Shown here piece by piece: positions 6,946 to 35,009 of a stretch of DNA of 37,075 nt. The notes below the pieces were generated by a model. It did no database searches, was not told the DNA's origin, and saw nothing but the letters and a program-made list of their open reading frames with translations. The position numbers and the translations under genes are program-made. The stretch's first letter is position 1, and each line of letters starts with the position of its first letter. Origin of the DNA: Octopus sinensis (Eukaryota). The stretch lies in the NCBI RefSeq assembly GCF_006345805.1, contig NW_021836801.1:1-37075 (forward strand). The letters run 5' to 3'.

Positions 6946-9865
6946 AATGAATGAATGAATGAATGAATTTTTATTAACGGAAAAGCCGAAAAAGAGGGAG
7001 GAGAAAGTTAATGAGACAACGTATGCCTCTTCTTCGTTGTTTCCCTCTTTTTTTTTTTTTTTTTTTAATATTTAATTCGAGAAGAAAAGGCTCTCTCAAG
7101 AACACTTCCAACCGTTTCCGTCGCGTCTTCCATCACTTGAGGGATGGGTTGGTCCAACTGGAGTCCATTTGCCAATTTGATGGCATATCGCCTCGTCTTT
7201 TCGAGCTTAGCGATAATGCCATCCCTTCAGCAGTAGGATACCATCCCTCGAACCCGTAGGTAAGCAATGGTTCGACGCACGTTTATAAACATATAAAAAC
7301 GTTTCCGGGGAAAGGTGGAAGTGAATTATGCTCCTGAGAATTTGAGCGCATTTCCTTCTCCTCGAGTCGATGTATCTGAAGTAAGAACCCTTGGATCCAA
7401 CTTCAACCCCAAGGTATTTCAGGTTCTCCGTTACTGTAAACCCATAGAGGTTTCTCGGCGTTTTCGTTTTGCTCCCTGTTTTGCAATCCAAGTGGCGGTG
7501 CACTTTTCTTTTGCAAGCGTCAGTCTTTTGATATGTACCATTCTTCCACTCTTGTCACGTATCCTTTTAACTTCCTCCACGAGATGTCTTTTCTCCACGA
7601 AGCATCCGTTATTAATATGTCGTCCGCGTAGATCATGAGACGACTGGTAGGATCTTTCGGTTTTGGAATATCAGCAACGTAAATATAAAAAGCAGGGGGC
7701 TCAAGACCGAGCCTTGAGGTACCCCTCTTTTGAGATCGACAGATTCCGACAAACGGTTTCGCATCGTATGTATGACCTTCTCATTGATAAATAGCTCTTC
7801 AGCCAATTGACCGTTTTAGACCCGGGTTTGCTCTTGGCGACACTTCCAAGAGGCCCAGGTGCCATACGCTGTCAAAGCTTTTGAGACATCGAGGCAGATA
7901 GCAATAGTCGCTGTATTGTTAGCAAGACTAAGCGAGATGACTTTCTCGAGTTCTCCAAAACAATCTCCACAGGATTTTTTCGTCGGAATCCCCACTGCTC
8001 CACTGCAAGTGCACCTGATTCCTCTACGAAGTTCCAAAGTCTTGTGAAGACAATCCGTTCCATAATTTTAGAGACGGAGCATATTAGGCTTATCGGCCTA
8101 TAGTTCTCTGCATGGTCCTTCATTTTTCCAGGCTTTGGAATCATACGTACGATTGACTTTTTCCAAGAGTCCGGTACGTATCCAAGTCTCCAGCTTACAT
8201 TGTATAGTGCGGTCAAGTATCGTAGGAGAATATTTGGAGCATGTTTGAATACAGTAATTGGAATGTAGTCATGACCGGGTGCATTGTTCTTGCAGCTCAT
8301 AATTGCGGCATACGTTTCTTCCAACGTTATGTCTCTGCACAGTGGTTTCGTATAACTCAAATTAGCTCGTAGACTTCTCTGTGCCTCACATATAAATTCT
8401 TTCGGAACCATGTCGATCGGATCCACCTCTTGAACTTTTGCCAGTTGACTTCGCAAATGTGAGGGAACTTCATCGAGCGGGATAGCTATTCCTTCAGTTG
8501 TTTTTAGTCGGATCTCTTCTCCTTTGTTCTCCATATTACTTAGTCTGTTGAAAACCTTCCAAAAATGAGGGTTTTCTTATTCAGTTTCGAGCATTGACTC
8601 TTCCAAGCAAGGTCTGAATGTTTTTTTGCGACATCATTTATCTCTATTTTCACGGTACGAATCTTATCCCGAAAACGAATACGATCTATGGGGTCACTGC
8701 ATCGTCTTAGCTTCTTTTCAAGGTTTTCCTTCCATTTTATAAGTTTTCTCAAAGATTCGTCAATCCGGGTTTTTCTGTTAGTATTTGACATGATGTATTT
8801 TCTGATTGAAGATTTTCGGAGAAAGTCCAGTATAGCTTCTCTGAGAATTTTATCAAGTTTTTCAATTGTATATTCGAAGAGATGTTTTGTATTGGATACG
8901 GTGTCAAATGCTTTTCATTGATACCTCAAGGTCCGACCAGATTGTCCGAGACGTATCGTATCCGATAAACAGATCTTCGCATATCGTAGATGATGTTCGC
9001 ATACACAAGGATTGAGGTAGGTGATCACTACCAATGTTTATCTCAATCCTTGGTATGCTGCATTGATGAACAAGATCTGCCGATACGAGGAAAACTCCAA
9101 TACAATCCTCTCCATAACAAGAGAAATGGTTTGGTTCTCGTGAGGTCAAAACACTAAAACCGCAGTTCTCCGATAATCTGAGGAGTATTACCGTCCGAAT
9201 TTGTGTTGGCACATCCGTACGATGTGTGTTTTGCGTTAAGGTCTCCTATTAGAATTCCTCTATCATTGTTCTGGAAAAATTCTTCAATAAGATTTTGATA
9301 ATTCTTCATTGCTTTGGAGTACATAGCTCCGACAGATATCCATCCAAGGGATGTTAGTAGTTTCAATGTAATCAGTTCGCACAAATTTTGTTCGACGATT
9401 TTCAAGTCCCTCACCATCAGATTGTCTTTATAATATATGGATGTCCCAGTGCCAGCCACTGCGTCAGGTCGCCATGGGATATCAATCGACTGAAAACCAT
9501 GGATTTTATGATGCTGATTTCCCTTAAGCTTCGTTTCATTAACAACCAATATGTCCATGTTTACCGAGCTAACCAAGTAGGTTAGCTCCGTAGCCCGTTT
9601 CCGAATTGACCGGGCGTTGATAAGCGTAAAAACGCTCATCTCGTCAAGTTTGGTGACTGTCCTCCATAACGAGCGCCACCAGTTCCAGTAAATTTTTAAA
9701 CGTTTTTTTAGTCGTCGTTTTCGATTTAAGATGGAGGTCCTCCAGTTTTGCTTTTAAATGTTCAATTGCATTTGTCTTTTCATCTGCCACCTGTATGTTG
9801 CATGGTGGTTGTCCCGGGTTTGATTTGGAAGTGTCCCCGAGTTTCATGCCTTTTTTGGGTTGAGT
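6946..9865 (-). mobile_element. 5'-truncated APE-RT LINE (Jockey/I/L2-like), degenerate
   Basis: ORF1 3' remnant 9644-9847 followed by ORF2; A19 run (T at 7048-7066) and AATAAAAA(TTCA)n tail at 6946-6974. Confidence 0.9.
7207..9639 (-). pseudogene. LINE ORF2: AP endonuclease + reverse transcriptase, multiple frameshifts and deletions
   Basis: INARSIR, NETKL, GDLNAKH, GSDHLP (APE); APGHDYI, IPKPGK, YRPISL..VSKIMER, QWGFR, LDVSKA, GVPQGSVLSPLLF, YADD, KYLGV (RT). Confidence 0.92.
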
Positions 9866-11088: not shown

Positions 11089-12687
11089 CAGTGGGTCAAA
11101 TTAGTCTTGGGACACTTGTATATTTTTAATAAAATTTTCTTTTCTTAAACATACCTGTTTTTATCTCATTTTTTTCAAAGGCTAAAAAATTAAGCAAAGT
11201 TTTTTACATAATAAAACATTTAAAATAATCCAAGGAAAATTTTATTTGAAAAATTTTGACATTTTTAAACAAACAGTCACAAAATCAAATGCTAATTAGT
11301 CTTGGGACAAATTACTTAATACTTTGTAAAGTATCCGTTATTCTCCAAAACTGCATTTAAGCGATTTTTATAATTGTTAACAAGCTTTTTACAAGTTTCA
11401 ACAGGAATTTTATTCCATTCTTCAAAACAAAATGATTTCAATTTCGCAATATTTTTTGGATTATGCGCCCATACTTTGGCTTTTAATTCCTTCCAAAGGT
11501 TTTCAATCGGATTAAGATCTGGGGACTGACTTGGCCATTCAAGGGTATCAATCAAATGTTCTTCTAGCCATTTTTGAGTTTTTTTGCGGTGTGCTTTGGA
11601 TCATTGTCTTGTTGAAATGTCCAATTTCCTGCAATACCACATTTCTCAATTGACGAAAATAGATTTTTTTCCAAAATATCACAGTATTTAGAAGCATTCA
11701 ATATTCCGTCAATTACATGAAGTTCTCCAACGCCCCAAGAAGAAAAACACCCCCATAGCATAATACTGCCACCTCCATGTTTAACTGTTGGTATGGTATT
11801 TTTGGACGATATTCATCCTTTGATTTACGCCACACGTAGCTTGTATAATTGTGTCCAAAAATTTCTATCTTTGTTTCATCCGACCAAATAATATTATTTA
11901 GAAAGTCGTCGTCTTTAAGTAAAATTTTTTTGGCATATTTTAGCCGTGCATGGACGTGTTTCTTAGTAAGCAGCGGAACTTTACGTGGACGACATTTATG
12001 GAACCCTTCTTTTCTTAGGGCATTTGTAACAGTCTGTGAGCATACTGGTGTTCCTATCTCACCCAAGTAAGTAGAGAGTTGTTTACGAGATAATCTCGGA
12101 TTATCAAGCACTTTTCGTCTAATTATGGAAATTGATCGAGATGATTTTTTTTTGGTTGTCCTGATCTTGGCTTATTTTTGGTAGTTTTAAATAATTTCCA
12201 TTTATTGATAATGTTCTATACTGTACTCTTCGGAATATGAACACTTTCGGAAATTTTTCGGATTGAGTTTCCTGCATTATATTCAAGAAGTATAAGTTTT
12301 TTTATTTCTTCTGAATGTTCCTTTCGCTTAGGCATGTACAAAATATTAATCGCAAATAATACTAATAATCATTTAAATATACGAATTAATCCAGAATTAG
12401 TATAATTTCGTTGATCGATATGTAGATCAATTCAATTATTTTATCAAAAAGTAAATAAATAACTAACTGTCCCAAGACTAATTGGAACATGATATTCTAT
12501 CTGTTGGAAATAAATGTGAAATTTTTCTATAAATAAAACGAATTTTGTAATTTTTTTATGATCTAGGATGTAAAGAGAACTAGGAGCACTATTATACTAT
12601 TGAAAAAAATTAAATAAAAACAGCTATGTTAACGAAAATAAAATTTTATTAAAAATAAACAAGTGTCCCAAGACTAATTTGACCCAC
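11089..12687 (-). mobile_element. Tc1-family IR/DR-type transposon inserted at a TA in Tigger copy A
   Basis: TA|CAGTGGGTCAAATTAGTCTTGGGACACTTG at left, inverted copy at 12660-12687. Inner 16-bp repeats at 11294-11309 and 12468-12483. Empty site GAATGCATAGATCAAG present in copy B near 33031-33046. Confidence 0.95.
11316..12335 (-). pseudogene. Tc1 DD34E transposase with one nonsense codon and frameshifts
   Basis: MPKRKE start at 12335; RSGQPKK, PRKVPLL, WSDETKIEIFG, KHGGGSIMLWGCF, FQQDNDPKH, WPSQSPDLNPIENLW; in-frame TAG at STV*NIINKW. Confidence 0.95.
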
Positions 12688-13325: not shown

Positions 13326-13866
13326 TTAACATTGAAGGATAAATTCATACATATAGTTCGTTCTGTCATGGAACCCTGTTATAAATAATCATAATAAACA
13401 CTTTTTCTCATTTTACCACTGTAAACAAAACCCATTCTGGTGATTATTGGGATCAAGCCGCTCGTGCAGTCCAACACGATTTGCTGAACTTTTTCCTTTG
13501 TAAATTTGCGAATTAAACTTCTCAACAACACCTCATACATCCCCTCATTAATTTAATCATCAAAATAAACAAATCTTTTTGACAAAGAATGGTGATATTT
13601 CACTTGCTTAATGACCGCCCTTGTATCAGAAAATAACCAGCAAGACATGTGCTAACAATCATTTTAAAATTATAACCGCCTGAAGCTCTTCGTAGTGGTA
13701 ATAACCCAATGTCACTCGGTCAGATATTGACTCCTCATCACTCTCATCACATCCAATATCCCCAACCAGCCATTCATAGTTTTTTAGAGTTGGGGAATCT
13801 ACTGCTTGATTAGAACTCATTTGTACTGTTCTTTATTTCCCGGACTTTCAAATTTTCTTCAATCAT
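13326..13866 (-). CDS. GNAT-fold acetyltransferase-like protein, 145 aa, copy A, 5 exons
   Basis: Exons 13866-13827, 13801-13677, 13651-13571, 13543-13402, 13375-13326 joined by GT-AG introns of 25, 25, 27, 26 nt give an open 438-nt ORF. C-terminal half HSLSKRFGMYEVLLRSLIRKFTKEKVQQIVLDCTSGLIPIITRMGF resembles GNAT motifs A/B. Gene model is firmer than the family call. Confidence 0.7.
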
Positions 13867-14141
13867 TTAGTTTTTTAATTGCGGAAATATTCTTTAAGTG
13901 GGCTGTGGCTCGTGCGAATTGATTAGACATTTCAACTAATTGGTGTTCTCAAATAATTTAATTGATTGGTTCAGTTTTAATACTTCTGCCTAAAAAATCG
14001 ATCTTTAAAAAATCTTTAAGAAGCGTACTCTTCTCCTTAGTCGGTTCGGCTTACAATTCAAGGAGGTTAATCTAACACAAATATTTTTTTGATAAACTAC
14101 TTCCGTCTATTTATAAAATAACAATTGTGTCAAAATCGCTA

Positions 14142-15290
14142 CAGTCCGACTCCGAATTGAGGCAGACCCCAGGGGTGGAGCACCCTCGGATTTTGGGGCA
14201 CTATAAAATTGTGGGGAACGAAATTATAAGTAAATAAAATTATATTTTATTAATAAATACATAATTTAAATTTACACGTTTATTTACATTTTTTTGTTGT
14301 CAATGGTTATAAACTACGAAACAAAATTAAAGATTGCTAAATTGATATCGAAGAACAAATTATGTGAAAGACAGATAATTCAAAAATAAAAAACTAGTAA
14401 AGGAATGATTTCACGAATAAAAAACAATTGTGCCTTTTCTTGAACAAGGAACTGTAAACACGGATGAATATCCTATGCCTTATTGTGAGAAATCGAAATT
14501 TGATGATCAAGTTTTTGAAATATTTCAGAAACTACGGGAAGATAAAATTCCAATATCAGGTCCTTTCATAAAGAAAATCGCCTTATATACGGCTTCTAAG
14601 ATTGGATTTGATTCTTTCAAAGCTTCAAACGGCTGGCTTGACAGATTCAAAAAGCGTCATGAACTGAGATTCAAATCAATTTGTGGAGAGAAAAATTCTT
14701 ATTGAGTTTTTATTTTTGCCAAAAAATACAACACCGTATTTGCAGCCAATAATCAAGACCTTCAAAGATCATTACTCAAATTATCTGATTTGTGCTTTGA
14801 GGATGATGGTGATGAATTCAAACGGTCGATAAACAAAATAAACCTTCGTCAGGTAATTCTGCTAATTTCTAAACCTGGGAAAAACTTGATCCAAGTTTAA
14901 TATTTAATTGTTGGGATCAAATTGAAGATTCGTGATTCCGTAAGAATTGAAGATAGAATTACAGAAGAATTAATCAACAATGCCGTAAACGGAACATTGA
15001 ATGGTGAAAATGACGAATTCGTCAATAATTTTTATAACGAAGGTTTAGAAAACGATAAAATGGAAACAAGTCTACGAGAAACGCAAGATTTGTTTGATCA
15101 GTAAGAGAAGAAAATTTTTCACATATCTCGTGAAATGCTCAAAGAATTTTACGATTTTCGACTTAATTTTATGAAAAATGTAACAAGTAAAAGGAAAACT
15201 GGGGATAAATTAACTGATTATTTTTCTAAAATTGATTGTTGATGTTTAATTGAGCCTACAATTTTAAAAATTGACCTAAAAATATTATTT
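14142..15290 (+). mobile_element. Tigger/pogo element family 2, copy A, internally deleted
   Basis: TA|CAGTCCGAC 5' end; CENP-B HTH (IPISGPFIKK..FKASNGWLDRFKKRH..CGE) joined directly to the C-terminal FLPKNTTPYLQP. Right TIR not found, so the end coordinate is approximate. Confidence 0.85.
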
Positions 15291-15308
15291 ACAACTTAAT
15301 TTCATATA

Positions 15309-16120
15309 CAGTCAACCCACTCTATACTGAACAACTTTACATAATTACAAGCTTCATAGAGTGTCGGGACATGAATTTTTTCATCTTCCTCTAGTTCTTC
15401 AACTTCGTCTTGCTGTTTTAGTTTTCTCAAAAAGTTTTTTATACAGTTTTCCTTCGTCAATTTGATCATTTTCATGAATCAAAAATTTTTATCATCTATT
15501 TCTTCTATTTCTATCACTTTCTGTATTACACATTTTCTAATGGATTTTTGAAACAATTTGTAATTGTCAATTCCGATACTTATAACCAAGCTTGATTTAT
15601 GAATATCAAGCAATCAAAATTTTTTCAACTTTTGCGTATTTTTTTTGATCTGCATTCCCATCATTAGTATAGAATTCAATCTTGTGTGCAGTTGTCACAC
15701 TTGTCTGTGCATGATTTTATTATTCTTTGTTGTAACTTCGATGTTGTATTTGAGGCAAAAATGTACAGTAGCATTATCAAGTAAAATTCTAATTGTTGTT
15801 TTTTTAAATCATTTTTTGTTCAATTTTATGAGCCATTTTAAGAAATAATCATAACAGCTAGTGTTCTACTTAACAAAAGTTAAAAAAATCCAGTTTCGTT
15901 TTAATTTAAAATAATTTTTGAACAATATTGTTCTAATTTTCTACTGAGGTTTACAGTAAAGTCTTCAATCAAAGAGATAGAGACTTGAATCAATAGTACT
16001 CTCGGCAGTTGTGGACAGTTATAGAAAGAGGATCTCCTATTTTCCCTTGACCACATTCTCAAAGTGAAATCTTCGTTATGCAAAATCCTTCCGAAAAAAA
16101 TCAAGTGCGGTTAGTAACTG
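15309..16120 (-). mobile_element. Tigger/pogo element family 3, decayed deletion derivative
   Basis: Bounded by TA|CAGT and ACTG|TA with imperfect TIR similarity; minus-strand remnants ILLDNATVH and INQAW.VSELTITNCFK. Confidence 0.6.
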
Positions 16121-16552
16121 TAGGAGGCTGAAAAATAGGAGCTGGGTGTACTATAATTTTTTCACCTTTTAATTTTTTTCATTTTTTTTGAAAACTGAAA
16201 TCTGCAATGACGATTTGTAGATAGATGTGGATCGACACTAACATTTTCTTTCCACCTTTTGTTCATCTGATCAGTTAGTTGTGACTGTTGTTTTTGCTTG
16301 GTTTGAAACTATAATGTGCAACTTGATGGTTAATAAATAAAAAAAGTAAGAAGCGAACTACCGACAAATTACATATACTATATATTTGATATCTTTCCCC
16401 GACTTAAAACTATGAATAAAAGGGACAGAAATGGCAGGATACACCAGATATCTTTTCCGTTATTTATTCACGTGCTAACTTATCTACACTACTATAGCCA
16501 GACATTACATTTAATCAGGACTGTCTAAAAGTAAAAAGTTCAACAAAAATAA

Positions 16553-17870
16553 TCAAATAGCATATCCCTTGTAACACTTTTGGTGGTAGTCCTAAGAACA
16601 TCCGAAAAAGACAACTACCAATTCACCCACGCGGATGGCATCCTTCAAGACCCAGCCTTCGTCCTCCTCACAGTGCCTCCAACCCCTCATTGCACACACT
16701 ACATCGACTTGTACACCCAATCTGTACGTCCTCACATCCACTAACATCTGCGGCCTGAGGACTACTACTTCTGGTCTCCACACCCCAAATCCAGTCCTAC
16801 CAACAATCACCACACCACTACAGCATGCTTCCTGTATAGGTCTCGACATGTGGTCACAGCACTCCTCTTCTCCACCTGTTGGTTAGCTCGAAAGTGTCTG
16901 TCCAGGTGTCTCTTGTACAACTCTGCCTGCCCGTCCCTGAAGCGAAATGCACATGACCCACAGGCCACACCGTCGTAGAGAGTCCTCACGAATGCATCGG
17001 GGGGTCTAGGACAATACAAAGTGGGAGTACCTCGATAGACTCTCCAGAGTGAGATCGACCGGACTGTCCCCCTATCACACATATCAAACAACAACAGATT
17101 TATTCATCAAAATACAAGTCATCAACACTCTAGAATACCTTTCTCTCATTTCCTGTCTGCTGCCTCTACACTTCATTGCAAAGACAAACCGGAATGTGTC
17201 GCTTAGTAGATGCCCCTTCATTGTCAGTCTACAATATGGAGAATAGATCAACTAGAGTGGTGGGTTGTGTGTACTTTCCGGACTTGAATTGGTAGGTGAA
17301 GGCAGGGATCTCAGCCAGAAGTTTGATTTGTGGGACGGGGCCTCGAATAGATAGAGAAGCGAGGAGACCAGACAAGGCAATGGAGTGAGGGAGTCCAAAC
17401 AAGTGGACAACTCTGGGAGGGTCCCCAAATCCAATTTCATAGAACATGTGGCCAATGATCAACTCGTGACAAGGCCCACCAAAGGAGACAGTCCTGGTGA
17501 CCCCATCAATGTCGAGTTGACTGGGCTTGGTCAAGTCGAAAGTGTAGGTGGTGTGGTCGATGGTGGTGAGATCACGGATTCCGGGGAGAAGGAGACCGCT
17601 CTGGCCTGATGGGCGACATAGACGAAGGGAATGAGCTCATCGAAGACAACAGTGTGATGTCGGCCGTCGATGATGACCATTTTGGGAGGTGGGCGGAATC
17701 TGAGTGTGTGTCCATCAGGAAGGGTGACAGGGCAACCACCGTACTGGGCGACGACCTGTCCGTCCATGATGACATTGTTGGTGGGACTGTCCACTCGGAT
17801 CTCCCATCTGCCACACTGCATGGGAGGTGCGTCTGCTCTGGCCTCCACAGGGAGGAGTTTTAGAAAATAA
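16553..17870 (-). CDS. PCF11: PCF11-like pre-mRNA cleavage factor, C-terminal half (two apparent frameshifts; 5' part not found)
   Basis: Spliced reading gives DLTLESLSRPPDAFVRTLYDGVACGSCAFRF..YKRHLDRHFRAN, DWI, CSVCNEGLEAL(W)EEDEGWVLKDAIRVGELDYHQKCY: the two PCF11/Clp1-interacting zinc fingers. Introns 17252-17229 (24), 17189-17166 (24), 17138-17072 (67), 17030-17006 (25), 16821-16797 (25), 16618-16592 (27). Frame breaks at 17583-17586 and near 16670. Confidence 0.85.
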
Positions 17871-19440
17871 CTAAACAAAAAAAGGAATAATTGAAGAAGT
17901 AATAACTATTAGCAAACAACCATTATATAATAGAATTTTACTATAAATAAAAAATATATGAATCTCACGGGAATAATTTGTATGAATATATTTTCTAATA
18001 TCATGTTATTAAAGTATAATGAACATAGTAAACAAATGCTGTTGTATTTTTCGGAAAACTTCACCTACGGGGAAAAGAAAATTTTTATTAATAAAAAGCC
18101 TAGATTACAGCTGGGTCTCGGGTACATTATATTATTTCCTGGTCCACAACTGTTACGAGCGAACTTTTTATTCGTTCATGAAGAATAACTTGCATGGGTA
18201 TATTTTTTAATTTTATGAATTAAAGTATAATGAAAATATAAAATTGTATCTTTACTCTGAGGCTACATCTAAAACGAAAAACTCCCATGCACGAGAAAGA
18301 AACAATAATAAAATATGAATAATCAGTGATGTAGAAATATTTGCATTTCTTGATGTAATTTCAATATAAAAGAAATATTTGAAAAGTATAAAGAAACACA
18401 TATGAGGTTTACTGCCTGGCTTTCTACGCGTCGAGAAGAAATTCTCGTAAAAAACAAGCCTACATTATAACTGGGCTACATAGTTTTATGAACTAATTTG
18501 ACGCAGCATCAATGCATTTTCAATATGATAAACACAATTATTTTGATTTCCATATTTTATCATAATTGAAGTATACATTGGTGTAGGGGTGCCCACTTGG
18601 ATCAGGACCTACACAACAGAGATTCCCAACTGGAATTATTCCGCCGCTGTGTAGGAGCCCTGACCAAACTTGGAGTGGATATGGATATGCAGCAAGAGCT
18701 CCTGCTAGAAGGGAGCAATTCAGCAACATAGCCACTATTAACTCTGGCTCACGACAGATAAATTGGACGCAAGCTCAGAAGAGTTCAGTTGCCTTGGCAT
18801 CAGTCTCGTCCTATCACCGTCCTTAATTCCTGTCACTTTCTCTTTCTCGGTTAATTACAATAAACTTGTTCGTTTGTTAGCTTGGCAAAATGGGTATTTC
18901 TCAATTATAAATTTTTTATTGACAAAATCAATTTTTTTTCTAAGCACACAAGTGTAACGCGTCTGGACGGGTCGCACGTCTGGACTGTGACATTTTATAT
19001 TGTAGAGATCTTAATAATATTCTGGGAGTGGGGACTCATATTTACTAAATCAGCACTGGATACGCGTACATTTCTTATAAGATTTACAAGAGGGATTTTT
19101 TGGTCTAAATTTCATCATAAAATGTGTATGTGTTTTTATTCTTTTTCTTTTCTAGGATCTTGGGGTTGTTGTAGTACAGCCTTAAGACGCGGCTGAACTT
19201 TTCACGCTCATCTTAGGGTTGCCCTTTAACTCTCTACATTCTAGCAAGTTCAGTTTGGTTCGACATCCAAATCCATGTTATATAAGGACATTTTTGAGCA
19301 AATTTCAGAAAGAAATAATATAAACAAGTTTTCATTTCAAAGTAGTTAATAATTTACAGAACGACAAATACGTACTTATATTGTTTGCAAGACGTAAATT
19401 ACAATAATTTTTTTAAACAAATTAGGTCAAGAGAAAAATC

Positions 19441-19605
19441 GTCATTGGCAGATAGCCAGAGTATTTCCTCTGACTATGGCCATAGATATTCTTTCGATTA
19501 AATACCGGTGCTCACACGGGTCGCCGGTAACCCTTTCGATTAATGAGGCAATGCGCTGGAGTAGGGTCCGAGTAGAAGGCCCCTGTATTCCTGACGTCTC
19601 AATGA
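19441..19605 (-). repeat. Second copy of the CRE-like C-terminal segment (matches 19885-20047)
   Basis: 165-bp direct repeat with a few differences; encodes IETSGIQGPSTRTLL..TGDPCEHR..SIAIVRGN. Confidence 0.9.
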
Positions 19606-19884
19606 ATGATTAGAGACATTTTTATAAGTGTTTAAAAATACAAATTAAAACGTATTGTAATAAGTGTTGATATCCGGGTATTATCGCGATCTATCATGAT
19701 AAATTGATACAAAATTGTCTAAATGACATTCATTTCATATAAAAATCATAAAACTAGATCAAATACTTTGAAAATCAATATATTCGCATTACTTAAATTT
19801 ACCGTATTATTGTAATAATAAATTTTAAATAAAACTAACCGTCTCTCGACGATATAAAATATATTTTAAATCAAAAGAGAAATA

Positions 19885-20620
19885 GTCATTGGCAGATAGC
19901 CAGAGTATTGCCTCTGACTATTGCTATAGATACTTTCGATTAAATTCCGGTGCTCACACGGGTCGCCGGTAACCCTTTCGATTAATGAGGCAATGCGCTA
20001 AAGTAGGGTCCGAGTAGAAGGCCCCTGTATTCCTGACGTCTCAATGACATAATTTGATATTCTGATTAGAAAAGGAGTTCACACACGTGACGTCCCAAAC
20101 CAGACACTTTCCCCTCTGGAATGGAAATGTGGTCATCCCATCGGGTCTTCTGCCGTCCTCTACGAAAATCCCTGCAGGTTCCAATTGTGTGTGGAATCCA
20201 GCAGTTCGAAGAGATCGACAGATGATCTGGTTCAGTTCGGAATGCCGTGAGGAACGTCCAATTCCGTTTCGACATGAGAGGGAGTGATATCCAAACTCGT
20301 CAGTCCACATTCCGCACCGGCATTGGTGTTTTGCATAGACGCGTAGACCGAGGCGCAGACAAACTCCTATTCTTACGGCTTCATCATTAAGAAGGCAGCC
20401 AGTTGTATTACAAGGGTAACAGTTTAGCCACGCGCCGCTTAGGGGCTGGCTGCCCGCTTGTAAACAAGCCAACCTTCTCTGGTCCATGGTTTCCTTTAGG
20501 CATGAAAACGTATTGGCGTGGACTTTCGACGTCCACTCCGATTGGCAGGTCACATCAGATGGCAATGGCAATCCCAGCTTTTCTCATACGGCGACGCAAT
20601 CATCCACAGCAAATGATTTC
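19885..20620 (-). mobile_element. CRE-like non-LTR retrotransposon, 3' fragment with RLE domain
   Basis: SGAWLNCYP, LRLG, CRCG..H.LSC, SRHSELN, EP..RRPDG, LVWDVTC, then after a deletion ETSG.QGP and SIAIVRGN. Confidence 0.9.
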
Positions 20621-20825
20621 CTCTGTTCGTTTATTTGAGAAAGAACAATAATTTTTGTTAATTTAGGCCCCTTTTATTAAAACAGCGTTACATCCATTTT
20701 TATGTGTTAACCCGTAATTATTAAATATAAATAATAGTTTGTCGTTAGTGGTAAGATTAAGTAAGCAAAAAGTTAAGATAATTTAAATTCATGCAAAATC
20801 TGAGGTGAATGGAATTCTGTTCGAG

Positions 20826-21120
20826 AACCAGTCAGGTACTTGGAGGGATTGCCAGCCAGCTAAGGAACAGGCACTGATCAACAAATGCCTTGCGAGAGCC
20901 TACGGAAACTCACTAGTGTCGATGTGGGTGGATGTGAAGAAGATGACCATGCCTACCTTGTTGAGTATCTGCAAAGACTCAATTTGCCTTCTTACTTTAT
21001 AATTTGTTGTGACTGTAATGGACAGATGGAACATGCACTACAACAAATACGAGGTTAAGGTAGAGAGGGGCATATTACAGGGCGACAGTATGCCTCTGTT
21101 GTTGTTTGTTTTTTCATTAA
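20826..21120 (+). mobile_element. RT fragment of the NeSL/R4-like family
   Basis: AKEQALINK, MWVDVKK, DHAYLVEYLQRLNLP, VERGILQGDS.PLLLFV. Confidence 0.8.
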
Positions 21121-22379
21121 AACTCAATATCTTTCATAATTTTATCATCGAACTGAGGCAGCAAGACCCGTCCCATAAGCCAATATTTTACGCTCTTTTA
21201 AACTCTGAGTTATTTGAAAGGAAAATTAAGTAATTAATGTTGGAGAAAATTTTATTGGGTCGAAGGGGGGATTGATAAAATCTGATTTCTTCTGCTCAAA
21301 ATGATAACTAAATAATTCAAGTTATAAGGTCTGATTTTGAATCATAAATTTGAGTTATCAACCGGTTTTATAACTTACAACAAACAATAGTTATTTTCCA
21401 TAAATCAGACGTACTGGTAACTTAAGCTACTAATAGCTCGGAGATGATCGTCCAGAATTGTTCACATACTCAACAGAGTTTCTATATGCTTGAAAGTAGC
21501 TAATTTTGATGCTTTTTAGTAGTCAACAATTTTTAATAAAGTTAATTTTTTAATTTTTTGCTCTTATATTTTCTGGCGATTTGAGGATACCTGATTGTTA
21601 AATGCTTTTTTTGTTTCAGTAAAATTTTTAATTTTAATTATTCAATATAAAGATGTGGCCTCAGAATGGAAGAAACTCCTTAGGGAGGCGCATCATTTGA
21701 AAACCTCTGCTGTAGACTATGATGTTATTTTCTTCATCGACAAAGTAATACTCATGATTAATCCCACCTGATTGTACATTTGCGAAACTATTGGCAGTTT
21801 TTGATTTACGTTTCTGTATTTATTATGGGAATACTCGAAACAAATTTGAATTCCTAATTCTTTAGAACACAAGCAAAATTTCGAGCAATTTAAACACTAA
21901 ACAACACCCACAACAGAACCAGCGCATGTAAGGGCCCGTAGGTGACTAAGGTCTTGTTTGCGGCAGTTGCGCAAAGAGAATTTTACAAAAGAGAACAAGG
22001 AAGTTAATTATTTTAATTAGTTTCGAATTATGAGTCTGTCTTATAAGTTACCTTTTTGATTGCTGTGCGGCTGTTACAAAGCTTGGAAGCCCATCTGGAA
22101 GTCCATTCATGTTTGAAATCCGTATGTTAGGCAGCCTTGCAATTAAGACAAACCTATTAGGAAACCCTGCGATTACTATTCAGTCACAAACGCGATCATT
22201 TACGTGGTTTGGAGTTTTGGTGATCCCTGACACTATGGATTGGCCACACTAATATTACTGAGCAGTAACTATGCAGAATAATCAGATGTCTTGACCCCAC
22301 AATATGAACTCGTATCAAAAAAACACCTCAAATTTAAAAGGTTATTCAAAATTCCTACAGAAATATTTTATCCGACTTG

Positions 22380-23474
22380 TCATAAACGACCCCCCTTCCC
22401 GAGGACAGTGTCGTAGGCAATGCCTATAAAAACGACCGCAGTTGAAATCCATTGATGAACCATCATTTCGTTCCCGAATACAATCACCGACAGAACAATC
22501 GTAAAAAATTTTCTAGTTGTAGTAAATATAGAACACACAAGTGGTCCTAAATGTGCAATAGTTCCGAATATAAAAAGCTAAAGTACATTCAAACCGAGCA
22601 AACCTGACCAATCGAACTCGTCCCCGCAGCACAAATTATATTCCCCAACAATTTTGGGTGAATTCTTACAAATTTCAAAAAACGCGTGAATTCGCCCGTG
22701 AATGAAATGACTGAAATACATTTATTTTATGTACCCGAAAAAAGAATAAGACACGACCACAAATTCATGTTGAACATTAAAATAAGTGGATCAAGTTTGT
22801 AAAAAGACTTTATCCTGTCTTGGATTCCACCTGTGAAGCCATCAAACAACAAAGAAATAATCTAAGTCTCAAAAACAGAAAAAACCAGGAGAAAAATGGG
22901 GAATAACCCATTCGACTGTTTTGACTCAAAATTAGAATAATTGGGTTTGTAGAAGAACACGGTGATTCCCAGTACTATTACTGCCACAGCAATATATTTA
23001 TGGATTGAGTATCTCTTCCGCCCAATCAGAACGCCAAGGAATAAAACAGAAATTGGCTTAACAGACTTTGCCAGAACTTGTGTTGGGTAACTGACATATT
23101 TTAGTGCATAATTACTAGCAAGCATTGCCACCACATACGTTACTCCACATGATATAAAATAATAAAAAGGAATATTATTTTCCTGACATATTTTGCCGTT
23201 CATAATATAATTTGCTAAAATACTCAATGGATTTCATTTACCGATTATGGCTGCCACGAGTGAGGCCAAACATAAGCAAAACACCAAAGTGAGAGTATAT
23301 TCGAATCTTGTCTTTAGGTTGTCCGAACTAATATAAACTGATTTTGTTCTACAAAATAATAAAAAAACATTTTAACATTTTTTCTTGAAAAAATCCATAG
23401 ATTAAATAACTTGAAAATATTCCCATAAAATAAAACAGGGATGAAATAATATTACTTTTTTTCACAACACCCAT
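22380..23474 (-). CDS. SLC35B1: SLC35B1-like nucleotide-sugar / ER ATP-ADP transporter (UAA family), 321 aa, intact
   Basis: Exons 23474-23377, 23348-23242, 23214-22886, 22861-22735, 22710-22604, 22577-22380 (introns 28, 27, 24, 24, 26 nt) give an open 966-nt ORF. Motifs YGFFQEKIT, SNYALKYVSYPTQVLAKSVKP, DGFTGGIQD, MNLWS, TGE, GQLFIF, GPLVCSIFTTTRKFFT, QW. Confidence 0.95.
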
Positions 23475-23699
23475 TAAATACGTGTCCTTAAATAAATATG
23501 TATTTATAATAATTAAATCGTTTTAATAAAATAAACAATTTAATATATTTAAAATAATTTTAATTGTGTTTGAATGTTTTTGGTAATTTCATTCTTTATT
23601 CCCTAACACTTGTACGCTATTATTTTGTAAGAATAGTGATTCATAAAACAGTTATTGGATTTAAAAACAAAAATAGTTGGAATTTAGGTTGAGGAATCA

Positions 23700-24050
23700 T
23701 TTTTTGTCGAGGAGTGTATGTGGCCTGAAATGTCCATTTTTAGAAAATGTTTTGAAGAATTTTGTTTCCAAATTGGCGAACAACCGGAAGGAAGCTCCGT
23801 ATCCCAACCAGGAAAATTCCAAGACAACTGTTGAAAAAGAACATTTTAAATGGAATCAACGCATCAATCAAGCAATATATTGGTCCCCTGCCAAATTTAA
23901 ATATCATCGATATTACCGCTATTATCTATGCAGGACAGTGCACATATGAAAGCCTTTCCAACAACATCAGGCCTAAGAGTATCTGGGAAGAATCAATGAG
24001 GGGGAAAATCGCCAAACTACAACTTGAGCAAGTCCTAACAGCGTGACACC
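23700..24050 (+). mobile_element. Probable N-terminal fragment of the NeSL/R4-like family
   Basis: IIYAGQCTYESL..RPKSIWEESMRGKIAKL resembles the pre-RT region I recall for this family; no start or RT follows. Confidence 0.5.
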
Positions 24051-24187
24051 TTGTGCTCATATGGCTTTAGGAAGATTCGTTTGACCGTTGGCCAAACCAA
24101 TTTACTTTGACATTGCCTTCCGACGACAGGTATATGCGAGCTTAGACCCTGAAAGAAATATTGTCTGGTTTATTTAAATATTAATAA

Positions 24188-25533
24188 TCATTGTTCAATG
24201 TGATTCTTAAATGAGAAAATGTATTTGTGTAGTCCTTTCTTGAGTTCGCGGTGGAGAATAGAGTTGGAAATGTTCATCTAAAATGGTGACGAATAATTAT
24301 GAACATTAATATCCACGTTGGAGAATACGGACAATTCACATGAGAAATTATCGGGGAGGGTGACTATGCGGAAGCCTGTCCCCAGCTTGATCGTGCCTCT
24401 CACTTGTGTGACCGTATTTTCTGGGACCACTGATATGCTCGCAAGGACGCAGAACGACTGGCCTCTGTCTGGAAATATTGCCATGTCCTCCGGAAAGTGA
24501 ACACTCTGATAGAATAATTAGAATACCTCGACTTGATTAATCCTCTCAGTACTTCCTTGGATACTAACATAACAACGTCAGAATCCTTGTTAAAACACGC
24601 CTCTAAAATGACAGAAATAATTACATTGATGGAGGAAATCGAATCAGTTCAGACACGATCAATTCGAGGGGTGCCAAAATCGTAGTCTTTCATGTTTGTT
24701 AGGAAATACCCTTCCACAGAATATATCCCCCAATTCGGGGTGAGACAACGACAAGATCGAGACTTGGTTGTCATTGTAGCACGAATTCCAACATTTCGAA
24801 TCAAAAATTGGCAAAACGACTTGCCAAACTTTTTTTTCTCTTCTTCCATGCCCTCGAGTTGTCAGGCGACAAAATACCATCTTATCTCTGCCGGATTTGC
24901 TCTGGACTGTATAAAAGATGCCGAGTCAGACTGATCCAGCCAGTCCTGCACGTTTTTGTGCAAGTCCCCTCTGTATTCCGCCCGACTGGAGTTGTCGGTG
25001 ATGTCTGAACTGGACAGTTTCCACAACTGCAGCCAGGAGAGTGCAAAGCTCAGAAGGAGGATTGGAATGACAAAACTGAGTGCTTGTATGTGTGAGGAGG
25101 GGTAGTTGGTGAACATGTAGTACTTTAGTATTTTGACCACAATCATGGCAGTCGTCCCAAATGCGAGAGACTAGGTTTGAGGGAGTCGATTACAATCAGA
25201 AGGACCAGTCGGTAACGGAAAGTGACGAAAAACCACAGGGAAATGAGGAGGCCCCTAAACACGGAAAGACACTGACATAAACTAAAAAACTCACCACAAA
25301 GTCAAAAAGTGACGTCTTGAATGAATAATGGACTATTTCGGATGCAAAACTAACTTCTGGTTTGTTGACCTGAATATTGGGGTAGGAATACAGACCATCA
25401 CGAATATGCACCACAGCAAACAGATGAGGATTGTGTCGAGGAAGGCAAATGACAGTACGTGCTTTACTGTGATGAAATTGAGGATACAGGCTTGGTCAGG
25501 AATAAGCAGTGCACTCTCAGATAAGTGCTTCAT
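24188..25533 (-). CDS. STARD3: STARD3/MLN64-like sterol transfer protein (MENTAL + START), ~386 aa, three apparent homopolymer frameshifts
   Basis: MENTAL: DTILICLLW, EIVHYSFKTSLFDFVCLSVFR, IVVKI, ILLLSFALSWLQLW. START-like: HPELGDIFCGRTTILAPLELIVSELI, FNK, SRVFTFRR, VRG, SNVDI, ILHREL. Exons 25533-25370, 25349-25295, 25271-25194, 25170-24878, 24852-24710, 24686-24625, 24602-24527, 24505-24305, 24277-24188; introns 20, 23, 23, 25, 23, 22, 21, 27 nt. Intron 4 is the least certain. Confidence 0.85.
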
Positions 25534-26949: not shown

Positions 26950-28600
26950 AAGCTTTTGTGATTCAAATGGATTATTTAAAACATTTTTAAATCAGTCATA
27001 AAAAACAAGCTTCAATGCCGGCTCTTAAAGGATTTAACATCATGTTAAATTCTCTTTCTGCCATAATCATAAAGAAAAGGTGTAAAGAACTTTTAAAGAA
27101 AAATAAAATATTTATAAAAAAGAAAGTCTATTTTTAGATGTTAAAGAAATTACTCAAGTTATGAAATTTTTAAAGGAATAAGAAAGTCCTATCATTTTAA
27201 TGTGGAAATTGGTTGACACGTGCTATGGCGAGCTTAGTCCTTCTTCAATGATAATTAGAACCACATTCTCAAAAAAATATTTTCTGAACAATTTAATGTA
27301 AAATGGGAGGGGCCGGAACATCAGTCGGATTTATGTCATTTATATGTGATGTTATGTCTACTAAAAACAAAAATTTCAAAATATTAATTGTAATTCGAAA
27401 AAACTCTTCTTGTCACCGTTCTTAGCGATAAACAGATAGATTCAAAAATGTTTTTTACGGTAATAGATTTTCAGCTACTGTCATTAAACATTCTTTAATA
27501 AATTCTCCGTCTGAAAATGTTTTCATTCGTTTCGCAATTATCTTTAATATTTCGTAATCAAAGGGAAGGCCAGCAGCCTGGCGGATCGCCAAACTGTTCC
27601 CCCGGATAACGGCGATCGAGAACCACTGAAGAAGCCAGTCCACCTCCCAAGGATCGTGAGTGCGCATGGAAATTTTGGCCCGAGCTTGCGGAGGAACCCG
27701 GGGCGCAGAGAGATTCCGATCTTTACCGATTCATTGTCAAGGAGAGTGCCAGATGGGGCGTTCGGGAATGCACAAAGCCAAGCTCCACTAGCCGGGGATG
27801 CTGCCGACAGAAGGCAAGCGCGGCGGTGTTGGTTGGACGACTCGAGCAGCAGATTGAAAGTTTGCTTGCATACTATTCGATCCCAGGCTCGTTGAGACAT
27901 TCGATCTTCCGGAGAGTAAAGACCTTGTTCCTTCCAGACTTCGCTGAAATGAGCCACATTTGTGTCCAAGGAAAATTCAGAAAAGGAGCGTAGAATTTCC
28001 ATGATAAGTGTTTGGCTCGAGGAGACGGACGAGACAAAAGCAGGGACCGATAAGTCTGAACATGAGCGGATGCCAACACCCCCAAAAGATAACGGGAGGG
28101 TTGCGCCTGTTCCAGGGGGAATTGCATAGTCTCCCTGGAAAAGCAAAGCACGGAGAAGAGCATAGCAAATAAGAGAGCTTTTGGATTGAAAAGCAATTCC
28201 GTAGAAGAAGTAATGCTGTATGTAAGTCCAACTGACTGATACGTTTAAAAACTCTGAATTCCTTTTTGCGTAGGGTCACGTCAATAGAATCGTAATTTGT
28301 GCTTGTGATATCATCTTTTTTACACCTCAAATTATAAAAAATGTTGTTTGCTTTTGGTAATTTTGTTCAAAACTCTTAATTTCTTTTATGCAAGATTCTC
28401 CTGTAAACTTGTTAAATTTTTCGTAATGAAGAGATTCATAATATCGCTAAATGTTATAAAGTTTTGGACAGCAACTTTTTCGAAGCATATTAAACATATA
28501 GGTTTTTCATTATCCTCAATAAAGAAATATTCACGAGTCCAATCTGGATTAAACGTGGGGACTTGGACATCTTTAATTCTTTTCGGATAATTCAAGATTC
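26950..28600 (-). mobile_element. Buster/SPIN (GTF2IRD2-like) hAT transposase remnant, interrupted by a CRE-like insertion
   Basis: FNPDWTREYFFIE..KPICLIC..VAV; after removing the insert, TNYEILKIIAKRMKTFSDGEFIKECL..SICLSLRTVTRR. Termini not identified; left coordinate approximate. Confidence 0.8.
27559..28289 (-). mobile_element. CRE-like non-LTR element, 5'-truncated and internally deleted, with 7-bp TSD
   Basis: LDLHTALLLLRNCFS..KL.YLL.SSP, ATLPLSFGGVGIRS, QRAWD, SGAWL.AFP..GTLLDN, SIAVIRGN. TSD TCGTAAT at 27552-27558 and 28290-28296; excision restores hAT codons ACA AAT TAC GAA ATA. Confidence 0.9.
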
Positions 28601-31788: not shown

Positions 31789-33375
31789 TTGACTAAACTA
31801 AGAAAAAAATTAATTTTCTTAGTAAATTGGCCAATTCTCAAATTGAAACACAATTGGCTGAATTTTCTTGATAAAACACAAATTATAAACTACAAGGAAG
31901 AAAATGACAGTGTTTCGTGTCAGCTTATGGCTGACAGATTCTCACATTTATTCCGCAAGACGATCTCGAAAAAGACGATAAATAATTTACTGCTTAATAA
32001 AAACTCTATTTTACGGGATTCGAAAATCTATCAAAATTCGTTTAAAGCTGCCCACAAACCAAAATTTCCTACGCGTGAAGAAAAATTGATCGAATGGATA
32101 CAATAGAGTCTAAAGGTATTAATTGAAAACTAATTTATAGGTGGTTTTTTGAATAATTCCTTAATATCGTGTAAGGCTGCGCATTTTACCGAGGAGTTAC
32201 AACTTAGTAACTTAAAAATTCTAATGGATATTTGGCAAAATTCAAAAAGAGACGGTTTTAGAATGCCAAAATTACACGGAGAGATGTGAACTGATAGAGA
32301 AGTTGACATTAATTCCTTTCGTGAAGAATTCAAAGAAATTTCTAAATTGTATAAGCCTGATCTAAGTTATAATTTAGATGAAATTGCATTATACTACAAG
32401 CTTATTCCATCGAAAAGCAGAAACCGATTCCAAGGATACAAAAATTTTAAAGACCTTGTGTCTATTATGCTTTGCTCAAACATGACCGGAAGTCATGAAT
32501 TGAAACCTGTGATGATCGGAAAACCGAAAATGCCTAGATGTTTTAGAAATTTTGACTATGGATGTCTTGTTTCATATTATAGCTCGCAGAAAGCTTGGAT
32601 GACTGGATCTATTTTTATTGATTGGATTATTAGCTTTGATCTTCAGCTTAAAATTGAAAAGAAGCACATTCTATTCCTCAAAACTTGGATTGTATTTAGA
32701 TTTTATTTTTTCCTAAAAATTCTACTGGATTACTACAACCAATGGATATTGGAATATAAAAACTTTCAAGACTCATTTCACGAGAAGAAAGCTCCAGTAC
32801 TTAATTGACTTGGTGGAGGCTGAAAATATTTCTTTATACAATTCATACAAAAAATTGACATGAAAAGATGCAATTTTGTTTGTTATTATGGGTTGGGGTG
32901 ACGTATATACTGAAACCATTCAAAATTGTTTTAAGATTTTAAATAAATTTAATAAATTAAACATTATGACACTGAAATTGAAAGAACTGATATTTTCGAT
33001 CTTTTAATGAGTGAAGATTTTTTAGAAATCGAATGCATAGATCAAGATATAAACAAAAATTGTTTAAAAGAAGATCAAGAGTTTGAAAGTAGCGACGAAG
33101 AGACAAAAATCATATATCCACTCAATAGAAAGGATATTGCAAGAAGATTAACTGAAATAAAAAGGGAACTTTACTGTAATGCAGAAAATGAGAATGATGT
33201 TTCGCTCATTTAAGAAATTACAAAGCAAAGTTAAAAAGAGTCAATAAAAAGGAATTAGGGATTGAATTTTTTAATAAAATTTAAACGTGTTTATTATATT
33301 TGTAGGTATTGATTTTGTTTCAAATTGGCCATAAAATTGTATGTACCAAAAATGGCCAATTGCGAGGGTTCACTG
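31789..33375 (+). mobile_element. Tigger/pogo element family 1, copy B
   Basis: Collinear with 9879-13023 but lacks the Tc1 and has a 31-bp deletion removing ILLLIDHCP; 3' TIR ends at 33375, followed by TA. 5' TIR not found. Confidence 0.9.
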
Positions 33376-33482
33376 TATACATTTTTCTGTTAAATTCTGC
33401 TAAATTAATCATTTTTTCTGTTAAATAACTACCTCAGTAAATGAAACGTTCAATTTCAAAGATATACAGATTTGACGTATTG

Positions 33483-34001
33483 ACCACAAAGAAAACACAG
33501 AAGATATTGGGTGTAACGTTTGACACTTTCCTCTGTTTCTCACCTCATGTTGAATCGATCGTGTCAACTTGTATAAAGAAAATCAATTTTGTGAAAGCCT
33601 TTCTTTCGAACTGTGGGAGAACTTGTCCGCCAGGGGTAGAGACCCTTTACAAGCAGTATATCGAGCCAACAATAGGCTATGCATGTGCTGCTTGGGGCTG
33701 TAACCTGGCGGCAACGAACCAACTAAAAATCGAGAAAATCCAAGAAAAATCCATAAACATACTGAAGGACCATACCGACATGAAAATTGTCCATCGAACA
33801 CTGGAGTCTCTTGTAGAGGCAAGTGGGAGGGATCGTGGAGATGGACCACAAGCATTTCACCGTACATACAGAAAGTGTGTGGGGTCACGGTCTGAACATC
33901 GTGAAAAGATGGCTAGACTGTTGAGAAGTGTCGGAATCACCTGAACACGTTAGTTAATGGTTAAGACGGTGATTCTGTTTTTGGCTTAAATAATAATAAT
34001 A
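33483..34001 (+). mobile_element. 5'-truncated LINE 3' end with (TAA)n tail, present only in copy B
   Basis: KILGVTFD..L.FSPHV, LYKQYIEPTIGYACAAWG, KIEKIQ; tail TAATAATAATA near 33991-34001. Empty site GTATTG|ATTAATAGC at 13125-13139 in copy A. Confidence 0.88.
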
Positions 34002-34195
34002 ATTAATAGCTATGAATATTGTCAAAAGTAAAAAACTTGTTCCCAGTACTGAGGCTTTACTTTTCAAACTCAGTGGTTTATTTGTGTTTCATTCAAAATA
34101 GCAAATGGATTGTATAAAAAATGACAATAAGAAAGTTTATTTAGAAATTTTTTATTTGGCTTGGGTCGAAAACAAAAATTAATAATATTAGTTTA

Positions 34196-34736
34196 TTAAC
34201 ATTGAAGGATAAATTCATACATATAGTTCGTTCTGTCATGGAACCCTGTTATAAATAATCATAATAAACACTTTTTCTCATTTTACCACTGTAAACAAAA
34301 CCCATTCTGGTGATTATTGGGATCAAGCCGCTCGTGCAGTCCAACACGATTTGCTGAACTTTTTCCTTTGTAAATTTGCGAATTAAACTTCTCAACAACA
34401 CCTCATACATCCCCTCATTAATTTAATCATCAAAATAAACAAATCTTTTTGACAAAGAATGGTGGCATTTCACTTGCTTAATGACCGCCCTTGTATCAGA
34501 AAATAACCAGCAAGACATGTGCTAACAATCATTTTAAAATTATAACCGCCTGAAGCTCTTCGTAGTGGTAATAACCCAATGTCACTCGGTCAGATATTGA
34601 CTCCTCATCACTCTCATCACATCCAATATCCCCAACCAGCCATTCATAGTTTTTTAGAGTTGGGGAATCTACTGCTTGATTAGAACTCATTTGTACTGTT
34701 CTTTATTTCCCGGACTTTCAAATTTTCTTCAATCAT
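34196..34736 (-). CDS. GNAT-fold acetyltransferase-like protein, 145 aa, copy B
   Basis: Exactly copy A + 20870 with no indels; the only difference is AT>GC (13595-13596 vs 34465-34466), changing Tyr to Cys in VK[Y/C]HH. All splice sites retained. Confidence 0.7.
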
Positions 34737-35009
34737 TTAGTTTTTTAATTGCGGAAATATTCTTTAAGTGGGCTGTGGCTCGTGCGAATTGATTAGACAT
34801 TTTAACTAATTGGTGTTCTCAAATACTTTAATTGATCGGTTCAGTTTTAATAGTTCTGCCTAAAAAATCGAGCTTTTAAAAAATCGTTAAGAGGCGTACT
34901 CTTTTCCTTAGTCCGTTCGGCTTACAATTCAAGAAGGTTAATCTAACACAAATATTTCTTCGATAAACTACCTCCCTCTATTTATAAAACAATTGTGTCA
35001 AAATCGCTA

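Follow-up and report, generated by a model that had tools for sequence, protein, structure and literature searches.

Contig NW_021836801.1, deposited with the Octopus sinensis assembly GCF_006345805.1, supplies the window examined here (the whole stretch of 37,075 nucleotides (nt) that was analysed), in which four loci on the minus strand give long open reading frames (ORFs) only after short GT..AG segments have been removed. These are an SLC35B1 gene, a STARD3-like gene, a PCF11-like locus and an ORF that had been assigned to the GNAT family. The window is AT-rich (GC 27-47% per 1-kb window) and eukaryotic in character. A previous sequence-only reading had described the genes as intron-dense, with introns of 20-28 nt, and that description holds: among 22 introns modelled, 21 measure 20-28 nt (median 24), one of which is possibly only 17 nt long, and one measures 98 nt. 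About 18 of the 23 lengths listed in that reading were reproduced, while the others proved frame-incompatible, were resized or could not be recovered. The argument developed below is that these segments are most probably ordinary animal introns, shortened to an extreme degree in a dicyemid parasite, and that the strength of the evidence differs considerably from one gene to the next.

Four interrupted genes

The SLC35B1 gene provides the clearest case. Six short ORFs in differing frames fuse, once five GT..AG segments are excised, into a product of 321 amino acids (aa) with a full UAA domain (PF08449, E 6.5e-48, aa 12-313). The top match of this product among 5.8 billion proteins is the SLC35B1 protein of Dicyema japonicum (UniRef B9ZYY0; 67% identity, 95% coverage, E 6e-129); among the matches listed, no other animal exceeds 48% identity. 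The top 120 listed matches contain the UAA domain, and those that carry a name are all SLC35B1-type or related transporters. Each of the five junctions lies inside an ungapped conserved block when the product is aligned (MAFFT) with D. japonicum and seven other animals, and the five-intron model scores 394.3 bits on a profile of 120 homologues, versus 385.9 bits or less for any alternative in-frame GT-AG choice.

The positions of these introns were compared with those of other spiralians by mapping the exons of SLC35B1, as annotated in Lottia gigantea and Capitella teleta, exactly onto the alignment. All five introns of the window match Lottia introns in both column and phase (five of the six in that gene); in Capitella, four of six occupy the same column and phase, and a fifth has the same phase and is offset by a gap in a variable loop. 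The lengths differ greatly, at 24-28 nt in the window versus 369-4632 nt for the Lottia introns and 49-7654 nt for those of Capitella. The sixth intron (column 163, phase 0), found in both Lottia and Capitella, is missing from exon 3 of the window gene (22886-23214), so that an ancestral spiralian intron has been lost, with intron loss proceeding alongside shrinkage. The SLC35B1 introns are real, and they are inherited from long ancestral introns. The five lengths that had been proposed for this gene (28, 27, 24, 24 and 26 nt) are confirmed by junction alignment, profile score and Lottia positions alike; the proposal that introns were retained in number as they became shorter is also borne out, with five of six ancestral spiralian positions and phases retained in the Lottia and Capitella comparison.

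Because SLC35B1 is nearest to the D. japonicum protein, at 67% identity as against 48% or less for other animals, the window most probably stems from the nuclear genome of a dicyemid, a mesozoan that lives as a minute parasite in cephalopods. Dicyemids had stood first among the candidate lineages of the sequence-only reading, and this top match bears out their place there. The stop codons among the modelled genes are TAA and TGA, which fits the standard code.

The STARD3-like gene combines a MENTAL domain, which occurs in the animal proteins STARD3 and STARD3NL, with a diverged START-like C-terminus. The MENTAL domain (PF10457, E 4.4e-15, aa 28-160; 56 bits, the cutoff being 22) extends across three junctions and scores 55-59 bits when four exons are spliced, whereas no single exon exceeds 18.5 bits. 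At intron 1, the alternative of 26 nt is slightly better than the 20-nt version (MENTAL 59.0 versus 55.4 bits). A word-indexed protein homology search with the model of this gene gave no matches.

The C-terminal part of this gene is far less secure. The stretch from HPELGDIF to HFPEDMAIF requires four introns, for which 41 workable combinations exist. No Pfam START match was obtained even at E<=10, with alternative splice models included; in the PDB, the region matches START structures of human STARD3 weakly but colinearly (E ~1), and the junction at intron 5 falls where the human START domain aligns without gaps, though weakly. The START-like region is also about 15 aa shorter than that of STARD3, and its four introns are separated by exons of 25-62 nt. 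Seven of the eight lengths given earlier for this gene (20, 23, 23, 25, 23, 22, 21 and 27 nt) recur in the model. The exception is the 25-nt segment with a GAG acceptor (24853-24877), which was rejected since it reads into a stop; a 20-nt intron (24888-24907) takes its place, and an extra intron of 24 nt (24601-24624) is needed.

The PCF11-like locus was missed by both Pfam and the word-indexed protein search, neither of which returned a match to the model. An exhaustive HMMER library search, by comparison, returned 204 matches at E<=1e-3 (best PCF11 match 2.6e-19), and seven of eight matches that were scanned contain PCF11 domains (CID, Pcf11_helical, Clp1_ID, Pcf11_C or zf_PCFS4), the remaining one having no Pfam match. 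The locus is thus predicted to encode the C-terminal half of PCF11, and the label that it had been given was right. No CID, helical-domain or other N-terminal exons were found in the window by tblastn with five full-length PCF11 homologues or by a motif scan; they could lie outside it or be too diverged. Apart from one frame disruption described below, the ORF is open across about 350 codons, with an exon GC of 0.53 versus 0.36-0.45 in the neighbouring genes.

Junctions 4 and 5 of this locus were scored on a profile built from 79 homologues alone. At junction 4 the 25-nt intron gives 89.0 bits, versus 83.9 and 84.2 bits for the donors that would make it 22 or 19 nt long; at junction 5 the 27-nt intron gives 89.0 bits, versus 85.1 and 83.9 bits for the alternatives, and one homologue (P0134) has an intron of 209 nt at the same position and in the same phase. 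Intron 1 is better scored at 17 nt than at 23 nt (98.4 versus 92.0 bits on the homologue profile, a gain of 6.4 bits). The sequence of this 17-nt candidate (17601-17617, minus strand) is GTCGCCCATCAGGCCAG, and its length lies below the 20-27-nt classes analysed in the literature.

Within the second zinc finger of the same locus (CCHC-type), the conserved CxxC and the half containing EEDEGW..H..C lie in separate frames, 13 nt apart. Explaining this as an intron of 19 or 22 nt was rejected (79.9 and 80.3 bits, versus 89.0 for the frameshift-corrected reading), and Pcf11_C is detected, below its cutoff, only in the frameshift-corrected reading (E 4.9e-4, 20.4 bits). The frame disruption is real, and represents either an assembly error or decay in the form of incipient pseudogenisation. 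The intron lengths that had been listed for this locus (24, 24, 67, 25, 25 and 27 nt) therefore survive in part. One 24, one 25 and the 27 stand; the first is 23 or, more likely, 17 nt; and the second 25 corresponds to the frame disruption, which it probably covered over. The 67-nt intron was rejected as frame-incompatible when taken alone (it needs a second intron and a micro-exon of 6-21 nt), and is better replaced by one of 98 nt with the same acceptor, 17072.

The GNAT-like ORF is the least certain of the four. With two introns alone it closes at 13379 after 129 aa. No Pfam family matches it at E<=10, alternative splice models included, and in the PDB it comes nearest to a spermidine acetyltransferase (E 0.3), along 43 residues within one exon, so the GNAT identity that had been claimed finds no family-level support. 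As regards its introns, said to measure 25, 25, 27 and 26 nt, a 25 and the 27 are required and the 26 is optional, whereas the fourth could not be reproduced in frame. The ORF has a second copy in the window, from which it differs at 2 of 417 exonic positions.

Table 1. Positions of the genes, their modelled introns and the other features of the window
Feature	Position	Strand	Length (nt)	Remarks
SLC35B1 gene	22380..23474	-		6 exons, 321 aa, TGA stop; Pfam UAA PF08449
SLC35B1 intron 1	23349..23376	-	28	Phase 2; GTTAAA..GTAG; column 77, as Lottia and Capitella intron 1
SLC35B1 intron 2	23215..23241	-	27	Phase 1; column 117, as Lottia intron 2
SLC35B1 intron 3	22862..22885	-	24	Phase 0; column 228, as Lottia and Capitella intron 4
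SLC35B1 intron 4	22711..22734	-	24	Phase 1; column 270, as Lottia and Capitella intron 5
SLC35B1 intron 5	22578..22603	-	26	Phase 0; column 306, as Lottia and Capitella intron 6
STARD3-like gene	24188..25533	-		MENTAL and diverged START-like C-terminus; modelled with 10 exons, 380 aa, nine introns
STARD3-like intron 1	25350..25369	-	20	Alternative 25370-25395, 26 nt
STARD3-like intron 2	25272..25294	-	23	Within MENTAL; 26-nt alternative costs 6.3 bits
STARD3-like intron 3	25171..25193	-	23	Within MENTAL; 35-nt alternative costs 1.9 bits
STARD3-like intron 4	24888..24907	-	20	CAG acceptor; unconserved linker; sole frame-keeping GT-AG segment of 20-28 nt
STARD3-like intron 5	24687..24709	-	23	AAG acceptor; in 41 of 41 frame-keeping combinations
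STARD3-like intron 6	24601..24624	-	24	GAG acceptor; alternatives 22 or 39 nt, choice ambiguous
STARD3-like intron 7	24552..24573	-	22	AAG acceptor; ambiguous
STARD3-like intron 8	24506..24526	-	21	
STARD3-like intron 9	24278..24304	-	27	Flanks weakly align to C-terminal part of STARD3 START
PCF11-like locus	16553..17821	-		C-terminal half only: repeat region, zinc finger 1, Clp1-interaction region, zinc finger 2; start codon uncertain
PCF11-like intron 1	17601..17623	-	23	Or 17 nt from donor 17617
PCF11-like intron 2	17229..17252	-	24	Unconserved linker; sole frame-keeping solution
PCF11-like intron 3	17072..17169	-	98	Sole single-intron GT-AG solution
PCF11-like intron 4	16797..16821	-	25	Phase 0; ungapped alignment to PCF11 homologues
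PCF11-like intron 5	16592..16618	-	27	Phase 0
Frame disruption, PCF11 zinc finger 2	16661..16677	-		Between CSVCNEGLEAL and EEDEGW
GNAT-like ORF	13326..13820	-		129-138 aa; family unverified
GNAT-like intron 1	13652..13676	-	25	Required in every solution keeping the longest exon
GNAT-like intron 2	13544..13570	-	27	GAG acceptor; required in every such solution; identical in second copy
GNAT-like optional intron 3	13376..13401	-	26	Or 24 nt from donor 13399
Second GNAT-like copy	34196..34690 (approximate)	-		Same three short segments; duplication 97.5% identical
LINE, endonuclease and reverse transcriptase	6977-9753	-		
Tc1/mariner fragment	11567-12171	-		
Pogo/Tigger pieces	14421-14690; 32290-32805			
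ORF with IS1595/ISXO2-type DDE transposase domain	2789-3373			Position is that of the domain
Insertions in the segmental duplication	11089-12687; ~33484-34001 and ~35694-36510			First in copy 1, the other two in copy 2

Boundaries and signals of the introns

The continuity of an ORF is in itself weak evidence for introns of this size, because GT..AG threading works almost anywhere in the window: permissive threading by dynamic programming (GT..AG segments of 18-45 nt) produced chains scoring up to about 800 codons, including through transposons and antisense strands. Such threading was used solely to propose candidates, and at SLC35B1 intron 1 it chose a length of 25 nt rather than 28. The boundaries were instead examined at the 11 junctions with homology-anchored flanking peptides (five in SLC35B1, three in MENTAL and three in the PCF11-like locus), where all 256 pairs of boundary dinucleotides were compared for their ability to bridge the junction in frame by the removal of a segment of 17-32 nt. 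GT..AG alone does so at all 11; the runner-up manages six, and the median is one.

The 21 short introns are poor in GC (0.17-0.35, versus 0.36-0.45 in exons), with an overall composition of 41% T, 27% A, 20% G and 12% C. Their donors vary beyond the initial GT, as had been observed beforehand, with A in eight, T in eight, C in three and G in two at position +3; this fits the published D. japonicum logos, within the limits of a small sample. At position -3 of the acceptor, T is found in 11, C in six, A in two and G in two. Position -7, counted from the 3' end, is an A in 12 of the 21 introns, versus 27% A overall, with T-rich neighbours, in a sample too small to judge; these may be weak branch-point A's of the kind reported for D. 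japonicum.

The acceptors deserve particular attention, as it had been claimed that GAG and AAG are used alongside the more usual forms. All 11 anchored junctions have YAG acceptors (Y being C or T), and the four non-YAG acceptors are found only at junctions that lack significant homology support. Two of the four, AAG at 24687 and GAG at 13544, are the sole acceptors that keep the frame where they stand; the GAG at 24853 was wrong, and GAG and AAG acceptors are at most candidates here. Retention of an intron led to a premature stop in 21 of 21 tests in which a single intron was left in place.

Surroundings of the genes

The remainder of the window is largely transposon debris. Remains of LINE, Tc1/mariner, pogo/Tigger and IS1595-type elements lie between the genes, in agreement with the description of the intergenic space as rich in transposable elements and comparable to the 49% of repeats in D. 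japonicum (PMC6736024). The segment 9878-15531 recurs at 31871-37075 with 95-98% identity, broken by insertions specific to each copy, and this segmental duplication contains pogo/Tigger fragments together with the GNAT-like gene. A search of the whole window against Rfam at gathering thresholds found no small nuclear RNA (snRNA) or other RNA gene, and no spliceosome components are encoded within the 37 kb.

Several smaller repeats are also visible. In the region 2272-3915, the ORF with the IS1595-type domain lies between two direct repeats, each some 400 bp long (2272-2668 and 3495-3889, 94.5% identical), that hold short tandem repeats internally. Another pair of direct repeats, 185 bp long (19427-19611 and 19871-20054, 93% identical), adjoins an ORF of 176 aa (20041-20571, minus strand) that has no Pfam match and that resembles, by eye, the Cys/His-rich C-terminus of LINE ORF2; a peptide similar by eye to that of this ORF recurs in the ORF chain 27547-28598 (minus strand).

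Origin and meaning of the short introns

Introns of this kind are already familiar from dicyemids. Ogino 2010 (Gene 449:70, as conveyed in PMC6543705) described highly shortened introns and a conservative exon/intron structure in 40 genes of D. japonicum. Zverkov 2019 (PMC6543705) subsequently reported, for the Dicyema species of Enteroctopus dofleini, a median intron length of 27 bp, two thirds of introns below 30 bp and 4.9 introns per gene, and Lu 2019 (PMC6736024) reported 6.2 introns per gene, 48.9% repeats, an expansion of LINE elements and a GC content of 36.7% for D. japonicum. Splice signals in the latter species have dwindled, according to Hadjez 2026 (PMC13644364), to GTa at the donor and, at the acceptor, to an AG preceded by weak A's. 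The published dicyemid median is 26-27 nt, and the likeness of the window to D. japonicum extends to GT-AG introns that are mostly below 30 nt, several to a gene and at conserved animal positions, to a repeat-rich genome with a GC of about 37%, and possibly to the reduced GTa and AG signals with their weak upstream A's; it differs in its SLC35B1, which shares no more than 67% identity with that of D. japonicum. The Dicyema species from E. dofleini is similar in its median of 27 bp and in having most introns below 30 bp (PMC6543705).

Comparable introns have also arisen elsewhere among animals. Myxobolid myxozoans (Henneguya salminicola, Thelohanellus kitauei and Myxobolus) are parasitic animals with reduced genomes, in which median lengths of 22-27 bp, a reduced 5' motif and conserved positions flanked by conserved exons are found (PMC13644364). 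They differ in their independent cnidarian origin and in genomes with relatively few transposable elements, whereas the proteins of the window are nearest to those of dicyemids. The SLC35B1 genes of Lottia and Capitella, on the other hand, share five intron positions with the window and differ in having far longer introns and in keeping the sixth.

The most probable explanation (with a probability of roughly 0.9) is that these are dicyemid genes with ordinary U2-type GT-AG introns, shrunk to about 17-28 nt with an occasional longer one, at ancestral animal positions and phases. A conventional spliceosome would remove them by way of intron definition. The signals left to it would be a GT(A/T) donor, a (Y)AG acceptor and a weak A about 7 nt before the AG as a possible branch point. 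Transcripts that were mis-spliced would be non-productive, because each retained intron brings a premature stop.

Several considerations weigh against this explanation. The removal of the segments from mRNA is inferred and not observed. The linker and START-like part of the STARD3-like gene, junctions 2 and 3 of the PCF11-like locus and the entire GNAT-like ORF stay dependent on the model. The retention result is partly circular, in that introns free of stops and a multiple of three in length would have escaped notice. Finally, the identity of 67% to D. japonicum SLC35B1 is ambiguous, and would point to a different dicyemid species or, less likely, to a diverged paralogue.

A first alternative, which applies to only part of the set, is that some of the apparent introns, those with non-YAG acceptors among them, are artefacts of forcing an ORF through genes that are decaying. 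Degenerating or non-functional copies would then be found in three places: the PCF11-like locus, the tail of the STARD3-like gene that resembles START, and the GNAT-like ORF with its duplicate. This is a tentative proposal, somewhat short of an even chance, and it is compatible with shrunken dicyemid introns at the remaining junctions. It draws on the failure to find the CID-containing N-terminal half of PCF11 in the window, on a frame disruption within a conserved zinc finger that no intron fits as well, on the GC content that sets the exons of this locus apart from its neighbours, on the short, finely divided START-like region that Pfam does not recognize, and on the position of the GNAT-like ORF, itself without a family match, inside a transposon-laden segmental duplication. 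The same PCF11-like locus, however, is otherwise open, and its junctions 4 and 5 are exactly supported by homologue profiles; its frame disruption could be an assembly error; and the proteins of dicyemids evolve fast (PMC6543705), so that weak family scores are to be expected. The few exonic differences between the two GNAT-like copies are neutral either way.

A second alternative holds that a reduced spliceosome chooses its sites mainly by length, with the sequence of the splice site nearly irrelevant and non-YAG acceptors freely used. The variable third position of the donor and the narrow band of lengths (20-28 nt) are in its favour, as are the two non-YAG acceptors for which no frame-keeping substitute exists, the weak alignment with the START domain of human STARD3, which runs ungapped across three non-YAG junctions, and the published D. 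japonicum logos, which consist of just GTa and AG (PMC13644364). It is nonetheless unlikely. Every anchored junction uses YAG, non-YAG acceptors being confined to segments without significant family support, and the GAG at 24853 is incompatible with the frame; the window contains neither spliceosome components nor snRNA, so that ‘reduced’ would be a conjecture here; and in myxozoans, introns that are equally short coexist with conserved U2 snRNA, including its branch-point-interacting region, and with U2AF1/2 (PMC13644364).

Ciliates offer a more distant parallel, with similar lengths (about 25 nt in Paramecium, 15-16 nt in Stentor), a narrow distribution and stops upon retention (PMC13644364); they differ from the window in that it carries an animal gene set (MENTAL, and a dicyemid as top match), TAA and TGA stops that fit the standard code, and metazoan-type LINE and pogo/Tc1 transposons. 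The remaining alternative, that the segments are sequencing frameshifts or stop readthrough, or that they come from a non-animal lineage (a ciliate, nucleomorph or microsporidian, in which introns of 15-35 nt are known; PMC13644364), can point to the one true frame disruption in the window and is otherwise contradicted by the results, which leave it with next to no likelihood: no other boundary pair bridges more than six of the 11 anchored junctions, the SLC35B1 introns are identical to those of Lottia in position and phase, the nearest SLC35B1 protein belongs to D. japonicum, the genes include a MENTAL domain and have stops that fit the standard code, and the plentiful remains of LINE and DNA transposons are unlike a nucleomorph or microsporidian genome.

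Ultra-short introns, conserved positions, reduced signals and a repeat-rich genome have all been published for dicyemids, and what is new here may be limited to the possible 17-nt intron and the non-YAG acceptors. It is rather improbable that this dicyemid routinely splices introns below 20 nt (as at 17601-17617) and uses GAG and AAG acceptors (as at 13544, 24687, 24601 and 24552). If this were true, the lower limit for animal introns would lie below the 20-27-nt classes analysed so far, and what governs the choice of splice site would chiefly be how far the acceptor lies from the donor, rather than the 3' sequence. How a spliceosome handles animal introns below 30 nt is a question that has already been posed (PMC13644364), and no new one is opened here.

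Because the ultra-short introns of dicyemids have been described since 2010, the interest of the window lies mainly in annotation. ORF callers of the prokaryotic style, and eukaryotic predictors run with a default minimum intron length, would fragment nearly every dicyemid gene, as illustrated by a 321-aa transporter split over six ORFs and by a MENTAL domain that becomes detectable only once four exons are joined. Beyond this, the SLC35B1 gene provides a worked case in which ancestral intron positions and phases outlast a 15- to 300-fold shrinkage in length, and the window contributes an example from a well-assembled genome that probably belongs to a second species of dicyemid.

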